Source of the DNA: Phaeosaccion multiseriatum
Lineage: Eukaryota > Protista > Ochrophyta, other classes
Length of the DNA: 64,000 nt
Assembly: GCA_965112735.1 (NCBI GenBank)
Contig: OZ218954.1
Coordinates: 2,480,001-2,544,000, forward strand
Reading direction: 5' to 3'
A program made the translations under genes and the position numbers. Below the pieces are notes generated by a model that saw only the letters and a program-made list of their open reading frames with translations, was not told the origin of the DNA and ran no database searches. Numbering within the stretch: position 1 is the first letter of the stretch; each line of letters opens with the position of its first letter. Positions 43,217 through 54,207 of this stretch are shown one piece after another.

Positions 43217-43493
43217 CTTGCTTATTTTTGCTCCGTGGGACTGGGAGGGAGGGGACGAAAAAGCGAAATAAAAGTAAAATGGGGTGGTGTCCCCCCTCCA
43301 GTGGACCTCTTCTGCTCAAAGAGAGAGAAGGGGGGCAAGGGGAAACCAGTGGAGGATGTCGGATCTTAACCTGCATGCCTTGTCCTCCCTCTTTGGTGCT
43401 GAAGAAGCCAAGAGTGGTTCGGCTTTAACTTTCCTTGAGCGTTCTAAGGGCCGATGGGTGGGAGGGCGGCAGTGTAGAAACTCTCGAGTGGAA

Positions 43494-46400
43494 ATGCTGG
43501 AGGCGGTGAGAGCGGCGGCAGCTGGCGGCGAAGATGGCAGTAGTATGGGTGCCGACGAGGGTATCAAGGAGGAACTCGTTGCTCTGTACGGAAAGCATAA
43601 CCCCGCAAAGCTGGCGGACCTCCCGGGCATGCTCGTGAAGTACGAGGTGAGCCAAGCAAGTTGTTCTAATGTGGGGAAGCCTGAGGCGGCGGACATTTCT
43701 GATTGATGGACCTGATTGTGCAGGGACGCTTGGGGGAACTACTGGAGAGAGCCAAGAACAAATATACAGGGAAATTCCCCCCTGCCGACGGACACGGCCC
43801 CGTCGTATACTTGGACCTCACCATCGGTGGCAGCCCAGTCGGTGAGGAACTGCATGCTTGTTGTGGCCGCTCCTTTCGCTTGCCCCTTCATCACTGGCTT
43901 TTTTGGTTGGCCTGTATATGGACAAATGCGTTGCTCATGTCGAAATGTGGGTACACTCCACAGGACGAGTCGTGATCCGCCTGTTCAAGGATCGCGTGCC
44001 CATTACTTGCGAGAACTTCCGAGCCCTATGCACTGGAGAAAAGGTACTTTCAAAGCAGCACCAGTTGAGCCAGAAAAATCATGTACTAGTCCTCGCTCAC
44101 AGATGCTGTTCTGTCAAGACAGTCCTACCACGGGAAGCAGTTGTCGTACAAGGGATGCTCGTTCCATCGAGTTTTGCCGAACTTCGTGCTTCAAGGGGGA
44201 GACTTTACTCGCCACGATGGAACCGGGGGGCACTCAATCTACATTGGGACAGAGCGCGCGGATAAGAACGGAAAGTTCAAGGACGAGGAGTGCTTCATGA
44301 AGCACCATACCCATGGCCTGCTGTCCATGGCAAACGCAGGTAAAACACACCCACAGTGCCGAACGAGACATTGAGACATTTACACCATTCCAACGCGTTT
44401 TCCGCACGGCCCTACGCAGGCCCAAACTCCAATGGGAGTCAGTTCTTTATCACCTTGAGAGCCGCACCTCATCTCGACGGGAAGCACATCGTGTTTGGCA
44501 AGGTCGAGGGCACATCTAGCCTCAAAGTCCTGGACCGGGTGAAGGCTGTGAAGACGAGAGGCGACGGCAGGCCTACTAGCGAAAACCATGTTTCCATTAG
44601 CAATTGCGGCGAGCTCGAAGGTGACAGCAAAGTGTGCGAGAAGAGCACCGATGTGGGAACGGCGGGCCGTGGCCTGGACGGGGTGGTAAGTAGAAGCTGG
44701 CAGGCACGGACTTCATCTTTACCCAAGTCTAGTTTTGCTAACGCCCGCAACTCAACAATCTCACAAAAGGGGGGGCGCGTCTCCTGGGTTGAATCCCCAA
44801 AAGAGAGCAGCTCCACCGGTCCTGCTTCTCTGACCTTCGCCAACGGCAGCTGGTCCCCATTTGTGGCCGCCTCTGACAAGCGGAGCGCACTTTCGGGAGT
44901 CAACGACGAGGTCCCGTGCACAAGAACCGAGGAGGCAGGAGCTGCAGGGAAGAGCGATAGTTTTGGCGGTGTGGGCAAGTTGACTGCGGGGCAGTGGAAG
45001 TGCCCGAGCTGCCTGGTTCCCAACGCACGGGATGTGGTGGAGTGTGCTGCCTGTGGTACTCTGAACCCCACGGCGGCGGCAGCAAGTAGGACGGGAGGAG
45101 GTGATAAGGCTGCAGCAGTGCTCTTCGGCGGTAGCAGCAGCAGCAGCGGCATCGGTGGCCAGAGCTCACTCGCCGCTGCTGGTGGCGACTCGTGTATTGG
45201 GTCGGGAGGGTTCAGTTTTGGGGCGAGCTCGGGGGGCAATACGACGTTCTCCTCCTCTCCTAGTGGCGGCAGCTCGGCAGGTGTGACAGTCAAGGACAGT
45301 CAGGCGAGCGGCTCTTGTGCCACATCGACGGGCGGAATCGCGCCTGGCGGATTCATGTTTGGTATCGGTGCTGTGGCATCAAGTGAGCAAGGCAGGGTGA
45401 AGGACAAGTCGGAGGGAGAGGGCAACAGAGAGGAGGAGGAGCAGGTGGAGGTGGTGGTGGAGGAGGATGAGGAGGAGGAGGAGGAGGAGGAGGAGGAGGA
45501 GGAGGAGGAGGAGGCTGTCTTGGGCGCGGACGGATACGAATACCCCGAGAGTGACGAAGATGAAGACATGGCGCTGGAGAAGGAGAAGGCGAGGCGCGCA
45601 TTTGACAGGTGTGGTGGGTCTGATGCGTCGGGGCTTGGTGAGGATAGATGGCCGGCCTTGTTCAAAGATCTTGGGACGACTTACGGCAAGGAGGAGCACG
45701 GACAAAAGATGCAGGCACTCGCGGACGGGACTGGGTTGGTGTCAAGAGCTGCTTTCGTGACGTGGTACATTGACTGGCTCTTCGGGAGCGACGACGAGGA
45801 GGAAGAGGACGGCGAGGACGAGGAGGACGAGGAGGAGGACAAGGAGGAGGGGGGCGCGGCGGTAGGGGCAGCAGTGAAGAGCGATAGTTTTGGCGGTGTG
45901 GGCAAGTTGACTGCGGGGCAGTGGAAGTGCCCGAGCTGCCTGGTTCCCAACGCACGGGATGTGGTGGAGTGTGCTGCCTGTGGTACTCTGAACCCCACGG
46001 CGGCGGCAGCAAGTAGGACGGGAGGAGGTGATAAGGCTGCAGCAGTGCTCTTCGGCGGTAGCAGCAGCAGCAGCGGCATCGGTGGCCAGAGCTCACTCGC
46101 CGCTGCTGGTGGCGACTCGTGTATTGGGTCGGGAGGGTTCAGTTTTGGGGCGAGCTCGGGGGGCAATACGACGTTCTCCTCCTCTCCTAGTGGCGGCAGC
46201 TCGGCAGGTGTGACAGTCAAGGACAGTCAGGCGAGCGGCTCTTGTGCCACATCGACGGGCGGAATCGCGCCTGGCGGATTCATGTTTGGTATCGGTGCTG
46301 TGGCATCAAGTGAGCAAGGCAGGGTGAAGGACAAGTCGGAGGGAGAGGGCAACAGAGAGGAGGAGGAGCAGGTGGAGGTGGTGGTGGAGGAGGATGAGGA

Positions 46401-49400
46401 GGAGGAGGAGGAGGAGGAGGAGGAGGAGGAGGCTGTCTTGGGCGCGGACGGATACGAATACCCCGAGAGTGACGAAGATGAAGACATGGCGCTGGAGAAG
46501 GAGAAGGCGAGGCGCGCATTTGACAGGTGTGGTGGGTCTGATGCGTCGGGGCTTGGTGAGGATAGATGGCCGGCCTTGTTCAAAGATCTTGGGACGACTT
46601 ACGGCAAGGAGGAGCACGGACAAAAGATGCAGGCACTCGCGGACGGGACTGGGTTGGTGTCAAGAGCTGCTTTCGTGACGTGGTACATTGACTGGCTCTT
46701 CGGGAGCGACGACGAGGAGGAAGAGGACGGCGAGGACGAGGAGGACGAGGAGGAGGACAAGGAGGAGGGGGGCGCGGCGGTAGGGGCAGCAGTGAAGAGC
46801 GATAGTTTTGGCGGTGTGGGCAAGTTGACTGCGGGGCAGTGGAAGTGCCCGAGCTGCCTGGTTCCCAACGCACGGGATGTGGTGGAGTGTGCTGCCTGTG
46901 GTACTCTGAACCCCACGGCGGCGGCAGCAAGTAGGACGGGAGGAGGTGATAAGGCTGCAGCAGTGCTCTTCGGCGGTAGCAGCAGCAGCAGCGGCATCGG
47001 TGGCCAGAGCTCACTCGCCGCTGCTGGTGGCGACTCGTGTATTGGGTCGGGAGGGTTCAGTTTTGGGGCGAGCTCGGGGGGCAATACGACGTTCTCCTCC
47101 TCTCCTAGTGGCGGCAGCTCGGCAGGTGTGACAGTCAAGGACAGTCAGGCGAGCGGCTCTTGTGCCACATCGACGGGCGGAATCGCGCCTGGCGGATTCA
47201 TGTTTGGTATCGGTGCTGTGGCATCAAGTGAGCAAGGCAGGGTGAAGGACAAGTCGGAGGGAGAGGGCAACAGAGAGGAGGAGGAGCAGGTGGAGGTGGT
47301 GGTGGAGGAGGATGAGGAGGAGGAGGAGGAGGAGGAGGAGGAGGAGGAGGAGGAGGAGGCTGTCTTGGGCGCGGACGGATACGAATACCCCGAGAGTGAC
47401 GAAGATGAAGACATGGCGCTGGAGAAGGAGAAGGCGAGGCGCGCATTTGACAGGTGTGGTGGGTCTGATGCGTCGGGGCTTGGTGAGGATAGATGGCCGG
47501 CCTTGTTCAAAGATCTTGGGACGACTTACGGCAAGGAGGAGCACGGACAAAAGATGCAGGCACTCGCGGACGGGACTGGGTTGGTGTCAAGAGCTGCTTT
47601 CGTGACGTGGTACATTGACTGGCTCTTCGGGAGCGACGACGAGGAGGAAGAGGACGGCGAGGACGAGGAGGACGAGGAGGAGGACAAGGAGGAGGGGGGC
47701 GCGGCGGTAGGGGCAGCAGTGAAGAGCGATAGTTTTGGCGGTGTGGGCAAGTTGACTGCGGGGCAGTGGAAGTGCCCGAGCTGCCTGGTTCCCAACGCAC
47801 GGGATGTGGTGGAGTGTGCTGCCTGTGGTACTCTGAACCCCACGGCGGCGGCAGCAAGTAGGACGGGAGGAGGTGATAAGGCTGCAGCAGTGCTCTTCGG
47901 CGGTAGCAGCAGCAGCAGCGGCATCGGTGGCCAGAGCTCACTCGCCGCTGCTGGTGGCGACTCGTGTATTGGGTCGGGAGGGTTCAGTTTTGGGGCGAGC
48001 TCGGGGGGCAATACGACGTTCTCCTCCTCTCCTAGTGGCGGCAGCTCGGCAGGTGTGACAGTCAAGGACAGTCAGGCGAGCGGCTCTTGTGCCACATCGA
48101 CGGGCGGAATCGCGCCTGGCGGATTCATGTTTGGTATCGGTGCTGTGGCATCAAGTGAGCAAGGCAGGGTGAAGGACAAGTCGGAGGGAGAGGGCAACAG
48201 AGAGGAGGAGGAGCAGGTGGAGGTGGTGGTGGAGGAGGATGAGGAGGAGGAGGAGGAGGAGGCTGTCTTGGGCGCGGACGGATACGAATACCCCGAGAGT
48301 GACGAAGATGAAGACATGGCGCTGGAGAAGGAGAAGGCGAGGCGCGCATTTGACAGGTGTGGTGGGTCTGATGCGTCGGGGCTCGGTGAGGATAGATGGC
48401 CGGCCTTGTTCAAAGATCTTGGGACGACTTACGGCAAGGAGGAGCACGGACAAAAGATGCAGGCACTCGCGGACGGGACTGGGTTGGTGTCAAGAGCTGC
48501 TTTCGTGACGTGGTACATTGACTGGCTCTTCGGGAGCGACGACGAGGAGGAAGAGGACGGCGAGGACGAGGAGGACGAGGAGGAGGACAAGGAGGAGGGG
48601 GGCGCGGCGGTAGGGGCAGCAGTGAAGAGCGATAGTTTTGGCGGTGTGGGCAAGTTGACTGCGGGGCAGTGGAAGTGCCCGAGCTGCCTGGTTCCCAACG
48701 CACGGGATGTGGTGGAGTGTGCTGCCTGTGGTACTCTGAACCCCACGGCGGCGGCAGCAAGTAGGACGGGAGGAGGTGATAAGGCTGCAGCAGTGCTCTT
48801 CGGCGGTAGCAGCAGCAGCAGCGGCATCGGTGGCCAGAGCTCACTCGCCGCTGCTGGTGGCGACTCGTGTATTGGGTCGGGAGGGTTCAGTTTTGGGGCG
48901 AGCTCGGGGGGCAATACGACGTTCTCCTCCTCTCCTAGTGGCGGCAGCTCGGCAGGTGTGACAGTCAAGGACAGTCAGGCGAGCGGCTCTTGTGCCACAT
49001 CGACGGGCGGAATCGCGCCTGGCGGATTCATGTTTGGTATCGGTGCTGTGGCATCAAGTGAGCAAGGCAGGGTGAAGGACAAGTCGGAGGGAGAGGGCAA
49101 CAGAGAGGAGGAGGAGCAGGTGGAGGTGGTGGTGGAGGAGGATGAGGAGGAGGAGGAGGAGGAGGAGGAGGAGGAGGAGGAGGAGGAGGCTGTCTTGGGC
49201 GCGGACGGATACGAATACCCCGAGAGTGACGAAGATGAAGACATGGCGCTGGAGAAGGAGAAGGCGAGGCGCGCATTTGACAGGTGTGGTGGGTCTGATG
49301 CGTCGGGGCTTGGTGAGGATAGATGGCCGGCCTTGTTCAAAGATCTTGGGACGACTTACGGCAAGGAGGAGCACGGACAAAAGATGCAGGCACTCGCGGA

Positions 49401-52400
49401 CGGGACTGGGTTGGTGTCAAGAGCTGCTTTCGTGACGTGGTACATTGACTGGCTCTTCGGGAGCGACGACGAGGAGGAAGAGGACGGCGAGGACGAGGAG
49501 GACGAGGAGGAGGACAAGGAGGAGGGGGGCGCGGCGGTAGGGGCAGCAGTGAAGAGCGATAGTTTTGGCGGTGTGGGCAAGTTGACTGCGGGGCAGTGGA
49601 AGTGCCCGAGCTGCCTGGTTCCCAACGCACGGGATGTGGTGGAGTGTGCTGCCTGTGGTACTCTGAACCCCACGGCGGCGGCAGCAAGTAGGACGGGAGG
49701 AGGTGATAAGGCTGCAGCAGTGCTCTTCGGCGGTAGCAGCAGCAGCAGCGGCATCGGTGGCCAGAGCTCACTCGCCGCTGCTGGTGGCGACTCGTGTATT
49801 GGGTCGGGAGGGTTCAGTTTTGGGGCGAGCTCGGGGGGCAATACGACGTTCTCCTCCTCTCCTAGTGGCGGCAGCTCGGCAGGTGTGACAGTCAAGGACA
49901 GTCAGGCGAGCGGCTCTTGTGCCACATCGACGGGCGGAATCGCGCCTGGCGGATTCATGTTTGGTATCGGTGCTGTGGCATCAAGTGAGCAAGGCAGGGT
50001 GAAGGACAAGTCGGAGGGAGAGGGCAACAGAGAGGAGGAGGAGCAGGTGGAGGTGGTGGTGGAGGAGGATGAGGAGGAGGAGGAGGAGGAGGCTGTCTTG
50101 GGCGCGGACGGATACGAATACCCCGAGAGTGACGAAGATGAAGACATGGCGCTGGAGAAGGAGAAGGCGAGGCGCGCATTTGACAGGTGTGGTGGGTCTG
50201 ATGCGTCGGGGCTCGGTGAGGATAGATGGCCGGCCTTGTTCAAAGATCTTGGGACGACTTACGGCAAGGAGGAGCACGGACAAAAGATGCAGGCACTCGC
50301 GGACGGGACTGGGTTGGTGTCAAGAGCTGCTTTCGTGACGTGGTACATTGACTGGCTCTTCGGGAGCGACGACGAGGAGGAAGAGGACGGCGAGGACGAG
50401 GAGGACGAGGAGGAGGACAAGGAGGAGGGGGGCGCGGCGGTAGGGGCAGCAGTGAAGAGCGATAGTTTTGGCGGTGTGGGCAAGTTGACTGCGGGGCAGT
50501 GGAAGTGCCCGAGCTGCCTGGTTCCCAACGCACGGGATGTGGTGGAGTGTGCTGCCTGTGGTACTCTGAACCCCACGGCGGCGGCAGCAAGTAGGACGGG
50601 AGGAGGTGATAAGGCTGCAGCAGTGCTCTTCGGCGGTAGCAGCAGCAGCAGCGGCATCGGTGGCCAGAGCTCACTCGCCGCTGCTGGTGGCGACTCGTGT
50701 ATTGGGTCGGGAGGGTTCAGTTTTGGGGCGAGCTCGGGGGGCAATACGACGTTCTCCTCCTCTCCTAGTGGCGGCAGCTCGGCAGGTGTGACAGTCAAGG
50801 ACAGTCAGGCGAGCGGCTCTTGTGCCACATCGACGGGCGGAATCGCGCCTGGCGGATTCATGTTTGGTATCGGTGCTGTGGCATCAAGTGAGCAAGGCAG
50901 GGTGAAGGACAAGTCGGAGGGAGAGGGCAACAGAGAGGAGGAGGAGCAGGTGGAGGTGGTGGTGGAGGAGGATGAGGAGGAGGAGGAGGAGGAGGAGGAG
51001 GAGGAGGAGGAGGAGGAGGAGGCTGTCTTGGGCGCGGACGGATACGAATACCCCGAGAGTGACGAAGATGAAGACATGGCGCTGGAGAAGGAGAAGGCGA
51101 GGCGCGCATTTGACAGGTGTGGTGGGTCTGATGCGTCGGGGCTTGGTGAGGATAGATGGCCGGCCTTGTTCAAAGATCTTGGGACGACTTACGGCAAGGA
51201 GGAGCACGGACAAAAGATGCAGGCACTCGCGGACGGGACTGGGTTGGTGTCAAGAGCTGCTTTCGTGACGTGGTACATTGACTGGCTCTTCGGGAGCGAC
51301 GACGAGGAGGAAGAGGACGGCGAGGACGAGGAGGACGAGGAGGAGGACAAGGAGGAGGGGGGCGCGGCGGTAGGGGCAGCAGTGAAGAGCGATAGTTTTG
51401 GCGGTGTGGGCAAGTTGACTGCGGGGCAGTGGAAGTGCCCGAGCTGCCTGGTTCCCAACGCACGGGATGTGGTGGAGTGTGCTGCCTGTGGTACTCTGAA
51501 CCCCACGGCGGCGGCAGCAAGTAGGACGGGAGGAGGTGATAAGGCTGCAGCAGTGCTCTTCGGCGGTAGCAGCAGCAGCAGCGGCATCGGTGGCCAGAGC
51601 TCACTCGCCGCTGCTGGTGGCGACTCGTGTATTGGGTCGGGAGGGTTCAGTTTTGGGGCGAGCTCGGGGGGCAATACGACGTTCTCCTCCTCTCCTAGTG
51701 GCGGCAGCTCGGCAGGTGTGACAGTCAAGGACAGTCAGGCGAGCGGCTCTTGTGCCACATCGACGGGCGGAATCGCGCCTGGCGGATTCATGTTTGGTAT
51801 CGGTGCTGTGGCATCAAGTGAGCAAGGCAGGGTGAAGGACAAGTCGGAGGGAGAGGGCAACAGAGAGGAGGAGGAGCAGGTGGAGGTGGTGGTGGAGGAG
51901 GATGAGGAGGAGGAGGAGGAGGAGGAGGAGGAGGAGGAGGAGGAGGAGGAGGCTGTCTTGGGCGCGGACGGATACGAATACCCCGAGAGTGACGAAGATG
52001 AAGACATGGCGCTGGAGAAGGAGAAGGCGAGGCGCGCATTTGACAGGTGTGGTGGGTCTGATGCGTCGGGGCTTGGTGAGGATAGATGGCCGGCCTTGTT
52101 CAAAGATCTTGGGACGACTTACGGCAAGGAGGAGCACGGACAAAAGATGCAGGCACTCGCGGACGGGACTGGGTTGGTGTCAAGAGCTGCTTTCGTGACG
52201 TGGTACATTGACTGGCTCTTCGGGAGCGACGACGAGGAGGAAGAGGACGGCGAGGACGAGGAGGACGAGGAGGAGGACAAAGAGGAGGGGGGCGCGGCGG
52301 TAGGGGCAGCAGTGAAGAGCGATAGTTTTGGCGGTGTGGGCAAGTTGACTGCGGGGCAGTGGAAGTGCCCGAGCTGCCTGGTTCCCAACGCACGGGATGT

Positions 52401-53109
52401 GGTGGAGTGTGCTGCCTGTGGTACTCTGAACCCCACGGCGGCGGCAGCAAGTAGGACGGGAGGAGGTGATAAGGCTGCAGCAGTGCTCTTCGGCGGTAGC
52501 AGCAGCAGCAGCGGCATCGGTGGCCAGAGCTCACTCGCCGCTGCTGGTGGCGACTCGTGTATTGGGTCGGGAGGGTTCAGTTTTGGGGCGAGCTCGGGGG
52601 GCAATACGACGTTCTCCTCCTCTCCTAGTGGCGGCAGCTCGGCAGGTGTGACAGTCAAGGACAGCCAGGCGAGCGGCTCTTGTGCCACATCGACGGGCGG
52701 AATCGCGCCTGGCGGATTCATGTTTGGTATCGGTGCTGTGGCATCAAGTGAGCAAGGCAGGGTGAAGGACAAGTCGGAGGGAGAGGGCAACAGAGAGGAG
52801 GAGGAGCAGGTGGAGGTGGTGGTGGAGGAGGATGAGGAGGAGGAGGAGGAGGAGGAGGAGGAGGAGGAGGAGGAGGAGGCTGTCTTGGGCGCGGACGGAT
52901 ACGAATACCCCGAGAGTGACGAAGATGAAGACATGGCGCTGGAGAAGGAGAAGGCGAGGCGCGCATTTGACAGGTGTGGTGGGTCTGATGCGTCGGGGCT
53001 TGGTGAGGATAGATGGCCGGCCTTGTTCAAAGATCTTGGGACGACTTACGGCAAGGAGGAGCACGGACAAAAGATGCAGGCACTCGCGAACGGGACTGGT
53101 TCAGTTTAG
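43494..53109 (+). CDS. cyclophilin-type PPIase fused to nine RanBP2-type zinc finger/FG/acidic repeats (multi-exon; final exon ~44420-53109)
   Basis: [39 protein letters not shown]|[23 protein letters not shown]; repeats carry [16 protein letters not shown]. Confidence 0.88.
44950..53099 (+). repeat. coding tandem repeat: 8 full units (927, 918, 927, 903, 927, 903, 930, 930 bp) plus 1 truncated unit
   Basis: Unit spacing read from equivalent ORF starts (45101, 46028, 46946, 47873, 48776, 49703, 50606, 51536, 52466); length differences lie in the (GAG)n tract. Confidence 0.95.
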
Positions 53110-53264
53110 TGCATGGGTTGCACTGATTATGCACCTTGACTTGGTGTATATTCATCCAAAAATACTCGCCAACACTCGCTTCGCATAATCCAAACTGGGA
53201 GCCTATGTCAATAATACACTATTTATCCTTCGACTCCAGCCTCCGAGAACGGAATATCTTTCGT

Positions 53265-54207
53265 GCAAGTGTTATTCACGATCGTGCAGTGGCCGCTGCG
53301 TACAATACCCGATCAATATGTGCCTCGTTCACGCTGCTTGTGCCCCGCCAATGCCCGCCTCCGCCCAGTCAAGAGCGCGCTGCTTCAGCAGCGAAGCCAG
53401 ATTGGGCGTTTTAATGCCGGCCAGGGCTTTCTTTGTGCCTCTCGATCGTGGCAAGCGATGAGTCAGTATAGGCTCATTCCTGATCGTTCAGTGAACGCTG
53501 CGTCCACGGCCTGACCAGCAAATGCTTCACGCTACTTTCACACCGCAAATGCCCGCCTCCCCCCAGCCAAGGGCCAGATTGCGCGTTTTGAGGCCACCCA
53601 AGGCCTTGGTCGTGCCTCTCAAGGCCAACTATTGCGTCAGGAGAGTCATTTGTGCTCGTGCAGTGACCGCTGCGTACTCGGCCCGACCAGCAAATGCCTG
53701 ATTTCACAATTTCTGGGTACCCATTGAGAGGCCTCGCTCCTCCTCATCCAGTCGTCGTCAATGTTGGGGGATAAGCCTTTTCACTAAGAGTGCAGTCCTG
53801 AGAGGGACTCACCTCGGGGCACACACAATGCTTTTGCCCCGCAAATGCCCACCTCCGCCTATCCAAGGGCCAGATTGAGCATTATGAGGCCGGCCAAGGC
53901 CTTGGTCGGGCCCCAATTGCGTCAGTAGCGTCATTTCTGATCGTGCAGTGACCGCTGCGGGCACGGCCAGGCCAGCCAACGCCTCATTCACGCTCCTTGT
54001 GCCCCGCAACTGCCCGCCTCCGCCCAGCCAAGAGCCAGATTGGGCGTTTTGAGGCCGGCCAAGGCCTTGGTCGTGCCTCTCGGGTCCAGAGATTGTGTCA
54101 GTAGGGTCATTTGTGATCGTGCAGTTACCGCTGCGTACACGGCACTACCAGCAAATGGCTGATTCACGCTGTTTTTGCCCCGCAAATGCCCACCTCCGCC
54201 TATCCAA
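53265..54207 (-). repeat. ~5 diverged monomers related to the 177-bp satellite, in inverted orientation
   Basis: TTGTGCCCCGCAA.TGC and GCCAGATTGGGC match the reverse complement of the satellite's GCATTTGCGGGGCACAA and GCCCAATCTGGC; spacing ~175-200 bp. Confidence 0.75.

Follow-up and report, generated by a model that had tools for sequence, protein, structure and literature searches.

Gene organization and transcript

The 64,000-nucleotide stretch of the Phaeosaccion multiseriatum genome analysed here (the window; GenBank assembly GCA_965112735.1, 67.1 Mb in 22 contigs; contig OZ218954.1, G000:C5:2480001-2544000) contains, at 43494-53109 on the + strand, a gene that joins a cyclophilin to an array of zinc finger repeats. 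The exon model, read from the sequence, has six exons, 9,171 coding bases and 3,057 codons; sequence searches were run exon by exon, and the exons were joined for the reading-frame check. From its N-terminus, the predicted protein comprises a short helical motif ('KYNP'), a cyclophilin, a linker and nine near-identical units. The first-pass annotation had placed a cyclophilin followed by nine repeat units in this interval, and both parts are borne out, with Pfam recognizing the cyclophilin and nine tandem units following it.

Exon 1 (43494-43646) opens with the first in-frame ATG and encodes the KYNP motif. It is followed by an intron (43647-43723) that is missing from the complementary DNA (cDNA) contig described below, and by exon 2 (43724-43841), in which the motif ends and the cyclophilin starts; this exon is similar to the relatives P0128 and P0023, and its GT..AG joints are seen in the cDNA contig. 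The cyclophilin continues through exon 3 (43964-44043; Pfam profile positions 11-33), whose joint is also seen in the cDNA contig, has its core in exon 4 (44123-44339), and ends in exon 5 (44420-44685), where the linker starts. An in-frame intron of 84 nt (44686-44769), spliced out in cDNA, lies ahead of exon 6 (44770-53109), a single open frame that carries linker, array and the TAG stop codon at 53107-53109. On the + strand, the open frame runs from 44356 to this stop codon.

Expression was checked by aligning contigs from four public runs to 43300-45900. Run X5, from a separate sample and study, yields a contig of 1,247 nt from which all five introns, each with GT..AG borders, have been excised, and which reaches 44978, thirty bases into the repeat. 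The absence of five such introns indicates that X5 is cDNA, although the run is labelled 'DNA?'. As the contig spans the cyclophilin and the start of unit 1, both are on one mRNA, and the concern raised at the outset that the repeats might lie outside the cyclophilin mRNA falls away. The gene is real, and is transcribed and correctly spliced in this second sample. The junction between the truncated unit 9 and its flank is found in X5 and in three DNA-like runs (loose end at 45734). Another strain is suggested by two positions in X5: 43413, where it reads G and the assembly A, and 45636, where the C variant alone is present. Ahead of the start codon at 43494, the transcribed leader (43355-43456) contains out-of-frame ATGs at 43355, 43375 and 43454, which may begin upstream open reading frames.

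KYNP motif and cyclophilin

The KYNP motif (43560-43646) has the consensus YRxxLVxFYQKHNPxKLxxVDxxLxKYKG and is without a Pfam match. It is also found, in one or two copies, close to the C-termini of propeller-type (Nup214-type) relatives, and the Nup214-like gene of this alga has it as well. Searching the genome with a motif profile identified about 10 loci, several other genes among them; a genome search with exon 1 alone returned no match besides exon 1 itself. The motif may be a docking element, and since it is common to Nup214-type proteins it is one candidate for the anchoring of the protein.

The cyclophilin matches Pfam Pro_isomerase (PF00160) across exons 3-5 (26.3, 48.3 and 57.6 bits, respectively), all above the cut-off of 21.7 bits, and together these matches cover profile positions 11-158/159. 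The catalytic residues are kept (CypA Arg55, Phe60, Gln63, Asn102, Phe113 and His126), as read from the sequence and from alignments to PDB entries. The position of Trp121 in CypA is a His, as in Cyp40. The best PDB relatives of exon 4 are CypA-like, with the RanBP2 cyclophilin ranking ~51st; for exon 5, the RanBP2 cyclophilin falls outside the best 60 PDB rows. By these comparisons, the domain is a generic CypA/Cyp40-like cyclophilin with no special closeness to that of RanBP2.

The nine-unit array

Unit 1 occupies 44928-45854 (927 bp) and includes a finger at 44986-45069, a linker with phenylalanine-glycine (FG) motifs, a poly-Glu tract and an EF-hand pair at 45529-45789. On the same + strand there follow unit 2 (45855-46772, 918 bp; finger 45913-45996, EF-hand pair 46447-46707), unit 3 (46773-47699, 927 bp; finger 46831-46914, EF-hand pair 47374-47634), unit 4 (47700-48602, 903 bp; finger 47758-47841, EF-hand pair 48277-48537) and unit 5 (48603-49529, 927 bp; finger 48661-48744, EF-hand pair 49204-49464). 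The second half of the array consists of unit 6 (49530-50432, 903 bp; finger 49588-49671, EF-hand pair 50107-50367), unit 7 (50433-51362, 930 bp; finger 50491-50574, EF-hand pair 51037-51297), unit 8 (51363-52292, 930 bp; finger 51421-51504, EF-hand pair 51967-52227) and a truncated unit 9 (52293-53100; finger 52351-52434), whose EF-hand pair is cut after its first half (profile match 52891-53106). The expected period of ~305 residues is thus confirmed, at 903-930 bp, and the units are far more alike than the earlier reader could tell.

The 309 residues of unit 1 are divided into a finger (20-47), a Gly/Ser/Ala-rich and near-uncharged stretch (48-150), an acidic stretch with the poly-Glu run (151-213), four helices (214-287) and a second acidic stretch (288-309). 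Each unit carries SFGG just before the finger, together with LFGG, FSFG and FMFG, all four within residues 1-150, so that the anticipated FG motifs in Gly/Ser-rich linkers are present in full in every unit. When residues 1-150 were shuffled, two FxFG motifs arose in 0.07% of cases and four or more FG motifs in 4%. An AlphaFold2 model of the whole unit, made without an alignment, is mostly disordered, with a predicted local distance difference test score (pLDDT) of 45, and was excluded from the fold search.

In a DNA alignment, three substitutions in total and a GAG run of variable length are all that sets the nine units apart. Between units 4 and 6 there is no difference at all, and both have a T-to-C change and a short GAG run, which indicates that units 3-4 were copied together to give units 5-6. 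The first 21 bases of unit 1 are unlike those of the other units, and the array proper therefore starts at ~44949. At the other end, the likeness stops abruptly at ~53100 (alignment column ~810), midway through the EF-hand block of unit 9, and the stop codon, seven bases past this breakpoint, is supplied by unrelated flank. About 190 bases of the inner units are missing from both flanks; this excludes a simple one-segment duplication and implies that the array was cut secondarily. A genome search found no other copies of the unit. In the three DNA-like runs, k-mer depth is 7.8, 7.9 and 8.3 times as high in the repeat as in unique flank, which fits 8-9 copies; since k-mer depth does not equal copy number, this serves as a consistency check only.

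Degenerate, satellite-like repeat copies lie at 53257-54207, ~150 bp beyond the stop codon, with spacings of 176-374 bp and 65-85% likeness. The 3' breakpoint at ~53100 may stem from a rearrangement that brought in satellite-like DNA. The array is most likely either very young or held uniform by unequal crossing-over, with its 3' end cut by a rearrangement beside satellite DNA.

Zinc finger class and modelled Ran binding

Each unit was predicted to carry a finger of the form W-x-C-x2-C-x3-N-x6-C-x2-C, and this is confirmed above the Pfam cut-off in all nine. Zn_ribbon_RanBP (PF00641; cut-off 27 bits) scores 31.6-31.9 bits in units 1 and 9 in the Pfam scan and 35.5 bits in all nine units in the genome scan. 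RanBP2-type fingers are a fold for which Ran, ubiquitin and single-stranded RNA binding all occur. In the sequence following the second Cys, CLVPN, the finger has Leu-Val rather than Thr-Phe. When the finger was compared to all PDB sequences, the 22 best rows were all fingers of Nup358/RanBP2 or Nup153, and the ubiquitin-binding NZF fingers and RNA-binding fingers of FUS and RBM5 had E > 0.1. From these matches, the finger is assigned to the Nup153/Nup358 class. Of about 25 other loci with RanBP2-type fingers in the genome, all but one read C-T-[FLY]-x-N; the lone exception is C-F-V-x-N, on contig C2, in a 1,741-residue protein with FxFG motifs.

A complex of the finger with Ran, GDP and zinc was modelled. 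Because introns interrupt the Ran gene of the alga, its place was taken by an intronless Ran encoded on a metagenome contig, which is 87% identical to the alga's Ran over the four identified Ran exons. The interaction prediction score from aligned errors (ipSAE) is 0.78 for the complex and 0.01 for the best of three controls; in a calibration that contained no small molecules, 51 of 78 solved complexes attained the mark for this score, as did 2 of 108 mismatched pairs. Three runs share at least 95% of contacts, and the partner pLDDT is at least 83. In the modelled interface, the L-V-P-N-A and C-G-T-L-N segments of the finger face residues 2-5, 31-42, 55 and 71-77 of Ran, such that the Leu-Val pair sits on the switch regions of Ran-GDP. 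The model shows the finger to be compatible with a Nup153-type mode of Ran-GDP binding, which is a statement of compatibility and not of binding itself.

The EF-hand block

The helical block in each unit had been described as EF-hand-like, and both its profile and its fold now identify it as a true EF-hand pair. In the protein studied here, Pfam does not recognize the block at E <= 1. A family profile built from 24 EF blocks (alignment A2) matches calmodulin and centrin at ~1e-13. With alignment A2, AlphaFold2 predicts four helices and the inter-loop bridge typical of a paired EF-hand (pLDDT 84), and a Foldseek search with this model returns EF-hand proteins only, at a query-normalized template modelling score (TM-score) of 0.6-0.7. 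The block has the signature AFD..., GTTY..EEH, FV.WY..WLFG.

Canonical calcium-binding loops, which have Asp at position 1 and Glu or Asp at position 12, are not found in this protein in alignment A2: position 1 of loop 1 is Gly and position 12 of loop 2 is Ala, and loop 2 is degenerate in all members of the alignment. Because these calcium-loop positions are non-canonical, a structural or partner-binding role is expected rather than calcium sensing. The EF profile has no match in the genome outside the gene studied.

A stramenopile family sharing the module

The EF block alone, searched exhaustively with phmmer against 1.84 billion protein representatives, identified 155 proteins at E <= 0.001, 70 of them at E <= 1e-10. 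The gene is thus one member of a family and no isolated case in a single alga. A word-index search with unit 1 found no relatives, probably because it was swamped by low-complexity words. Many of the relatives reach 2,000-3,300 residues and contain the block 2-10 times; they carry Zn_ribbon_RanBP (2-8 copies) and pass the Pfam cut-offs for EF-hands. Among the best-scoring 60 of the 155, fingers of the [L/M/C/S/F]-V type are present in nearly all, and FG motifs number 30-74 in the long proteins. The module order is conserved and is the one seen here: EF block, FG, finger, then two to four FG.

The partner domain of the module differs among family members. In P0005 and P0011, Pfam recognizes an N-terminal NUP159/NUP214 beta-propeller (64.3 and 44.1 bits, respectively; cut-off 29.6), and a local iterative search places this propeller in 43 non-redundant representatives; in nine representatives, a cyclophilin, either at the start or at the end of the protein, stands in place of the propeller. 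P0001, with 8 fingers and 10 EF blocks, begins with the last residues of a cyclophilin. Named propeller-type members come from the oomycetes Peronosclerospora, Aphanomyces and Lagenidium and the diatom Epithemia, and named cyclophilin-type members from the brown algae Sphacelaria and Laminaria and from Phaeothamnion; all are annotated as hypothetical or unnamed. As taxon names are known for few members, 'stramenopiles' is a minimum range. Full-text literature searches found no description of an EF-hand/finger/FG family. By its sequence relationships, the gene belongs to an undescribed stramenopile family in which the module is joined either to a Nup214/Nup159 beta-propeller or to a cyclophilin.

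One relative bears on the domain order. P0106, from a gut-metagenome contig (L116:10001-15256), is a single open frame of 1,751 residues, with the next gene on the opposite strand. It contains FG motifs, two EF blocks, a finger, more FG motifs, a KYNP motif and a C-terminal cyclophilin, which is a Nup358-like order. The reversal of the Nup358 order proposed at first sight therefore stands for the gene here, where the cyclophilin is N-terminal, and does not extend to the family, in which P0106 shows that the order is not fixed.

Identity between the units of one protein ranges from 39-54% in P0001, through 74% in Laminaria and 96-98% in Epithemia, to almost 100% in the gene studied here. EF blocks that are identical or nearly so within one protein are also found in P0003 (Epithemia), P0014, P0020, P0021, P0030, P0031 and P0037. 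In a quick and poorly resolved tree, the blocks group within proteins, and the protein studied here is on a long branch; given this resolution and branch length, no donor or order of events is drawn. The clustering within proteins, together with the identical blocks, suggests that repeated duplication or homogenization is a trait of the family.

Candidate pore-protein genes elsewhere in this genome

The 1,741-residue open frame on C2 (G000:C2 ~1445728-1450950; L031:4729-9951, - strand) carries one Nup153-class finger (GQWKCTACFVRNEKDATKCVSCGT), the only other Leu/Phe-Val finger found in the genome, and ~25 FTFG/FSFG motifs. It is a plausible candidate for a Nup153/Nup1-like basket nucleoporin.

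A Nup214/Nup159-like gene lies at G000:C9 ~811100-822500 (L034, L117, - strand), where the propeller profile of the family gives four colinear exon matches, so that the beta-propeller spans at least four exon pieces. Beyond the propeller, the gene continues with FG exons in which 'GGYPPMSSKAPxxFG' is repeated and with an exon encoding a coiled coil; at the C-terminus it has a pair of KYNP motifs accompanied by more FG. Neither a genome search with Pfam PF16755 nor Pfam on single exons of this gene returned a match. Unlike its oomycete and diatom counterparts, the C9 gene has neither finger nor EF block. As the EF profile is also unique to the gene studied, the module resides on the cyclophilin protein alone in this lineage.

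Comparison with known pore proteins

Nup358 was found only in opisthokonts by Neumann et al. (PMC2951903), and a 2021 review considers it vertebrate-specific, with no mention of fingers in stramenopile pore proteins (PMC8421043). Like Nup358/RanBP2, which has 3,224 residues, the protein described here (~3,057 residues) is a giant FG protein that combines a single cyclophilin with an array of Ran-class fingers, nine here and eight in the human protein, and Nup358/RanBP2 fingers are among the best solved-structure matches of its finger. The remaining features differ. No Ran-binding domain of the RanBD1 type was found when every exon and unit was scanned with Pfam at E <= 1, nor was the SUMO E3 region found; ~90 residues precede the cyclophilin, and the N-terminal alpha-helical anchoring domain of Nup358 is not seen there. 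The Nup358 cyclophilin is C-terminal, whereas the one here is N-terminal and has no special relation to that of RanBP2, and the EF-hand pairs and poly-Glu tracts here are absent from Nup358. The Nup358 lineage is a different one, which points to convergent assembly. Judged on its domains, the protein, which fails every testable Nup358-specific feature, is best described as an analogue of Nup358 and not a homologue. The independent assembly proposed in the first-pass annotation gains support from the generic cyclophilin, from the missing Ran-binding and Nup358 N-terminal domains, and from the named relatives, all of which are stramenopiles.

Nup153 and the Nup153-like gene on C2 share with the protein a finger of the form C-x2-C-[L/F]-V-x-N and FxFG motifs after the finger. 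Nup153 differs in that its N-terminal domain is particular to it and its FG region is a single long C-terminal one, and it has neither cyclophilin nor EF-hand; the Pfam Nup153 family is not among the matches of the gene here. The Nup214/Nup159 homologues of Peronosclerospora sorghi (P0005), Aphanomyces euteiches (P0010) and Epithemia (P0003) share the EF-hand/finger/FG module and the KYNP motif; they have an N-terminal beta-propeller and long C-terminal FG regions, whereas the gene here starts with a cyclophilin. The closest architecture is that of the cyclophilin-type relatives from Sphacelaria rigidula (P0007), Laminaria digitata (P0009) and Phaeothamnion confervicola (P0128), and P0001, which share the cyclophilin, the FG motifs and repeated EF-hand/finger units. 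Their cyclophilin exons are 55-73% identical to those of the gene here. These relatives have 2-3 fingers (8 in P0001) and units that are 39-74% identical, as compared to nine almost identical units here.

Discussion

Taken in aggregate, these data suggest that the protein is pore-associated, either as a peripheral FG nucleoporin or as a partner of the cytoplasmic filaments, and that it is a convergent analogue of animal Nup358. We assign this reading a probability of about 0.6. The occurrence of the same module inside Nup214 of other stramenopiles is what makes the protein look like an independent, animal-Nup358-like pore protein. The nucleoporin-like character first suggested for it has gained ground accordingly, through the shared module in Nup159/Nup214-propeller proteins, the Nup153/Nup358-class finger and the Ran-GDP model. 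If this is correct, the protein would reside on the cytoplasmic side of the pore or close to it, with its nine fingers holding Ran-GDP nearby. The 36 FG motifs of the linkers could dock transport receptors, and the acidic tracts would keep the chain extended. The EF-hand pairs, with their degenerate calcium loops, would act as protein-binding or spacing modules, and the cyclophilin might act on passing cargo or on neighbouring proteins.

Several observations weigh against this proposal. No recognized pore-anchoring domain (beta-propeller, coiled coil or alpha-solenoid) occurs in any exon, and the pore location of the protein, as of the other family members, is one that we infer. Exons 5-6 encode 611 Asp+Glu and 218 Lys+Arg residues, an extreme acidity that is unusual for FG domains. 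Structures of Nup153 fingers with Ran have been solved, and the high score of the complex model may therefore reflect memorization of these structures by the predictor. Since unit 9 is truncated and its stop codon comes from the flank, the present C-terminus may be damaged. Finally, the presence of the whole nine-unit array on one mRNA is beyond proof by short contigs; the unbroken frame, open over the 8.3 kb of the array with no frameshift, GAG runs included, argues for all nine units in one transcript.

The lack of any anchoring domain is also what could be expected of a soluble or shuttling cofactor that binds Ran and transport receptors, like Nup50, RanBP3 or other mobile FG proteins, and that has no stable place in the pore; the module in Nup214-type proteins would then reflect shared parts and not a shared location. 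In this genome, the cyclophilin-type and propeller-type genes are indeed separate, and the Nup214-like gene on C9 has no module. However, the FG motifs, the Ran-class fingers and the KYNP motif are all common to Nup214-type proteins, and in animals such finger arrays are known only in pore proteins (Nup153 and Nup358). A soluble cofactor is thus the less likely explanation, though the strongest of the alternatives.

Alternatively, the array could have grown recently and in an essentially neutral manner, next to a satellite region, within a partly damaged gene whose ancestral function with 2-4 units is perhaps impaired. The near-identity of the units, the cut in unit 9, the stop codon in the flank, the satellite-like repeats just downstream and the 2-3 fingers of the brown-alga relatives would all fit such a history. 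This is nevertheless improbable, as the frame stays open across the array and a second sample contains correctly spliced transcript of the gene. Large arrays occur elsewhere in the family (P0001), as do the near-identical units of the diatom (96-98%).

More doubtful still is the proposal that the fingers bind ubiquitin or single-stranded RNA instead of Ran and serve another pathway. The RanBP2-type fold has all three activities and Pfam does not separate them, but the finger has Leu-Val where ubiquitin-binding NZF fingers have Thr-Phe, the NZF, FUS and RBM5 fingers rank far lower, and the complex model places the Leu-Val pair on the Ran switch regions. Tandem units as similar as these pose difficulties for assembly, yet an assembly artefact in the array or its copy number is very improbable, given depth ratios of 7.8-8.3, both array ends in independent contigs and a second sample, and distinct GAG-run lengths that, with the common variant, define the unit order.

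Pore association as a convergent Nup358 analogue is thus the reading that we carry forward. We extend it only tentatively, at somewhat short of an even chance, to the family: stramenopiles would have evolved, independently of animals, arrays of fingers that capture Ran-GDP at the cytoplasmic side of the pore, by means of a lineage-specific module that moved between a Nup214 homologue and a cyclophilin protein and whose copy number turned over rapidly by unequal crossing-over, up to the nine units found here.

The purpose of the Nup358 finger array and cyclophilin is still debated. Nup358 is regarded as having arisen in animals, and an independent second case in which Ran-class fingers, FG motifs and cyclophilin are combined would be a natural replicate that makes this question testable, and its value as a replicate is raised by the same module being built into Nup214 of related lineages. 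The array is in addition a clean example of a coding tandem array homogenized at the DNA level, and the family offers names for ~150 large proteins from diatoms, oomycetes and brown algae that now count as 'hypothetical'. If the protein is a pore protein, its EF-hand module would be the first among pore parts. If the proposal is true, the pairing with a cyclophilin in two unrelated lineages would suggest that prolyl isomerase activity is useful at the pore, and not an accident of Nup358 history.

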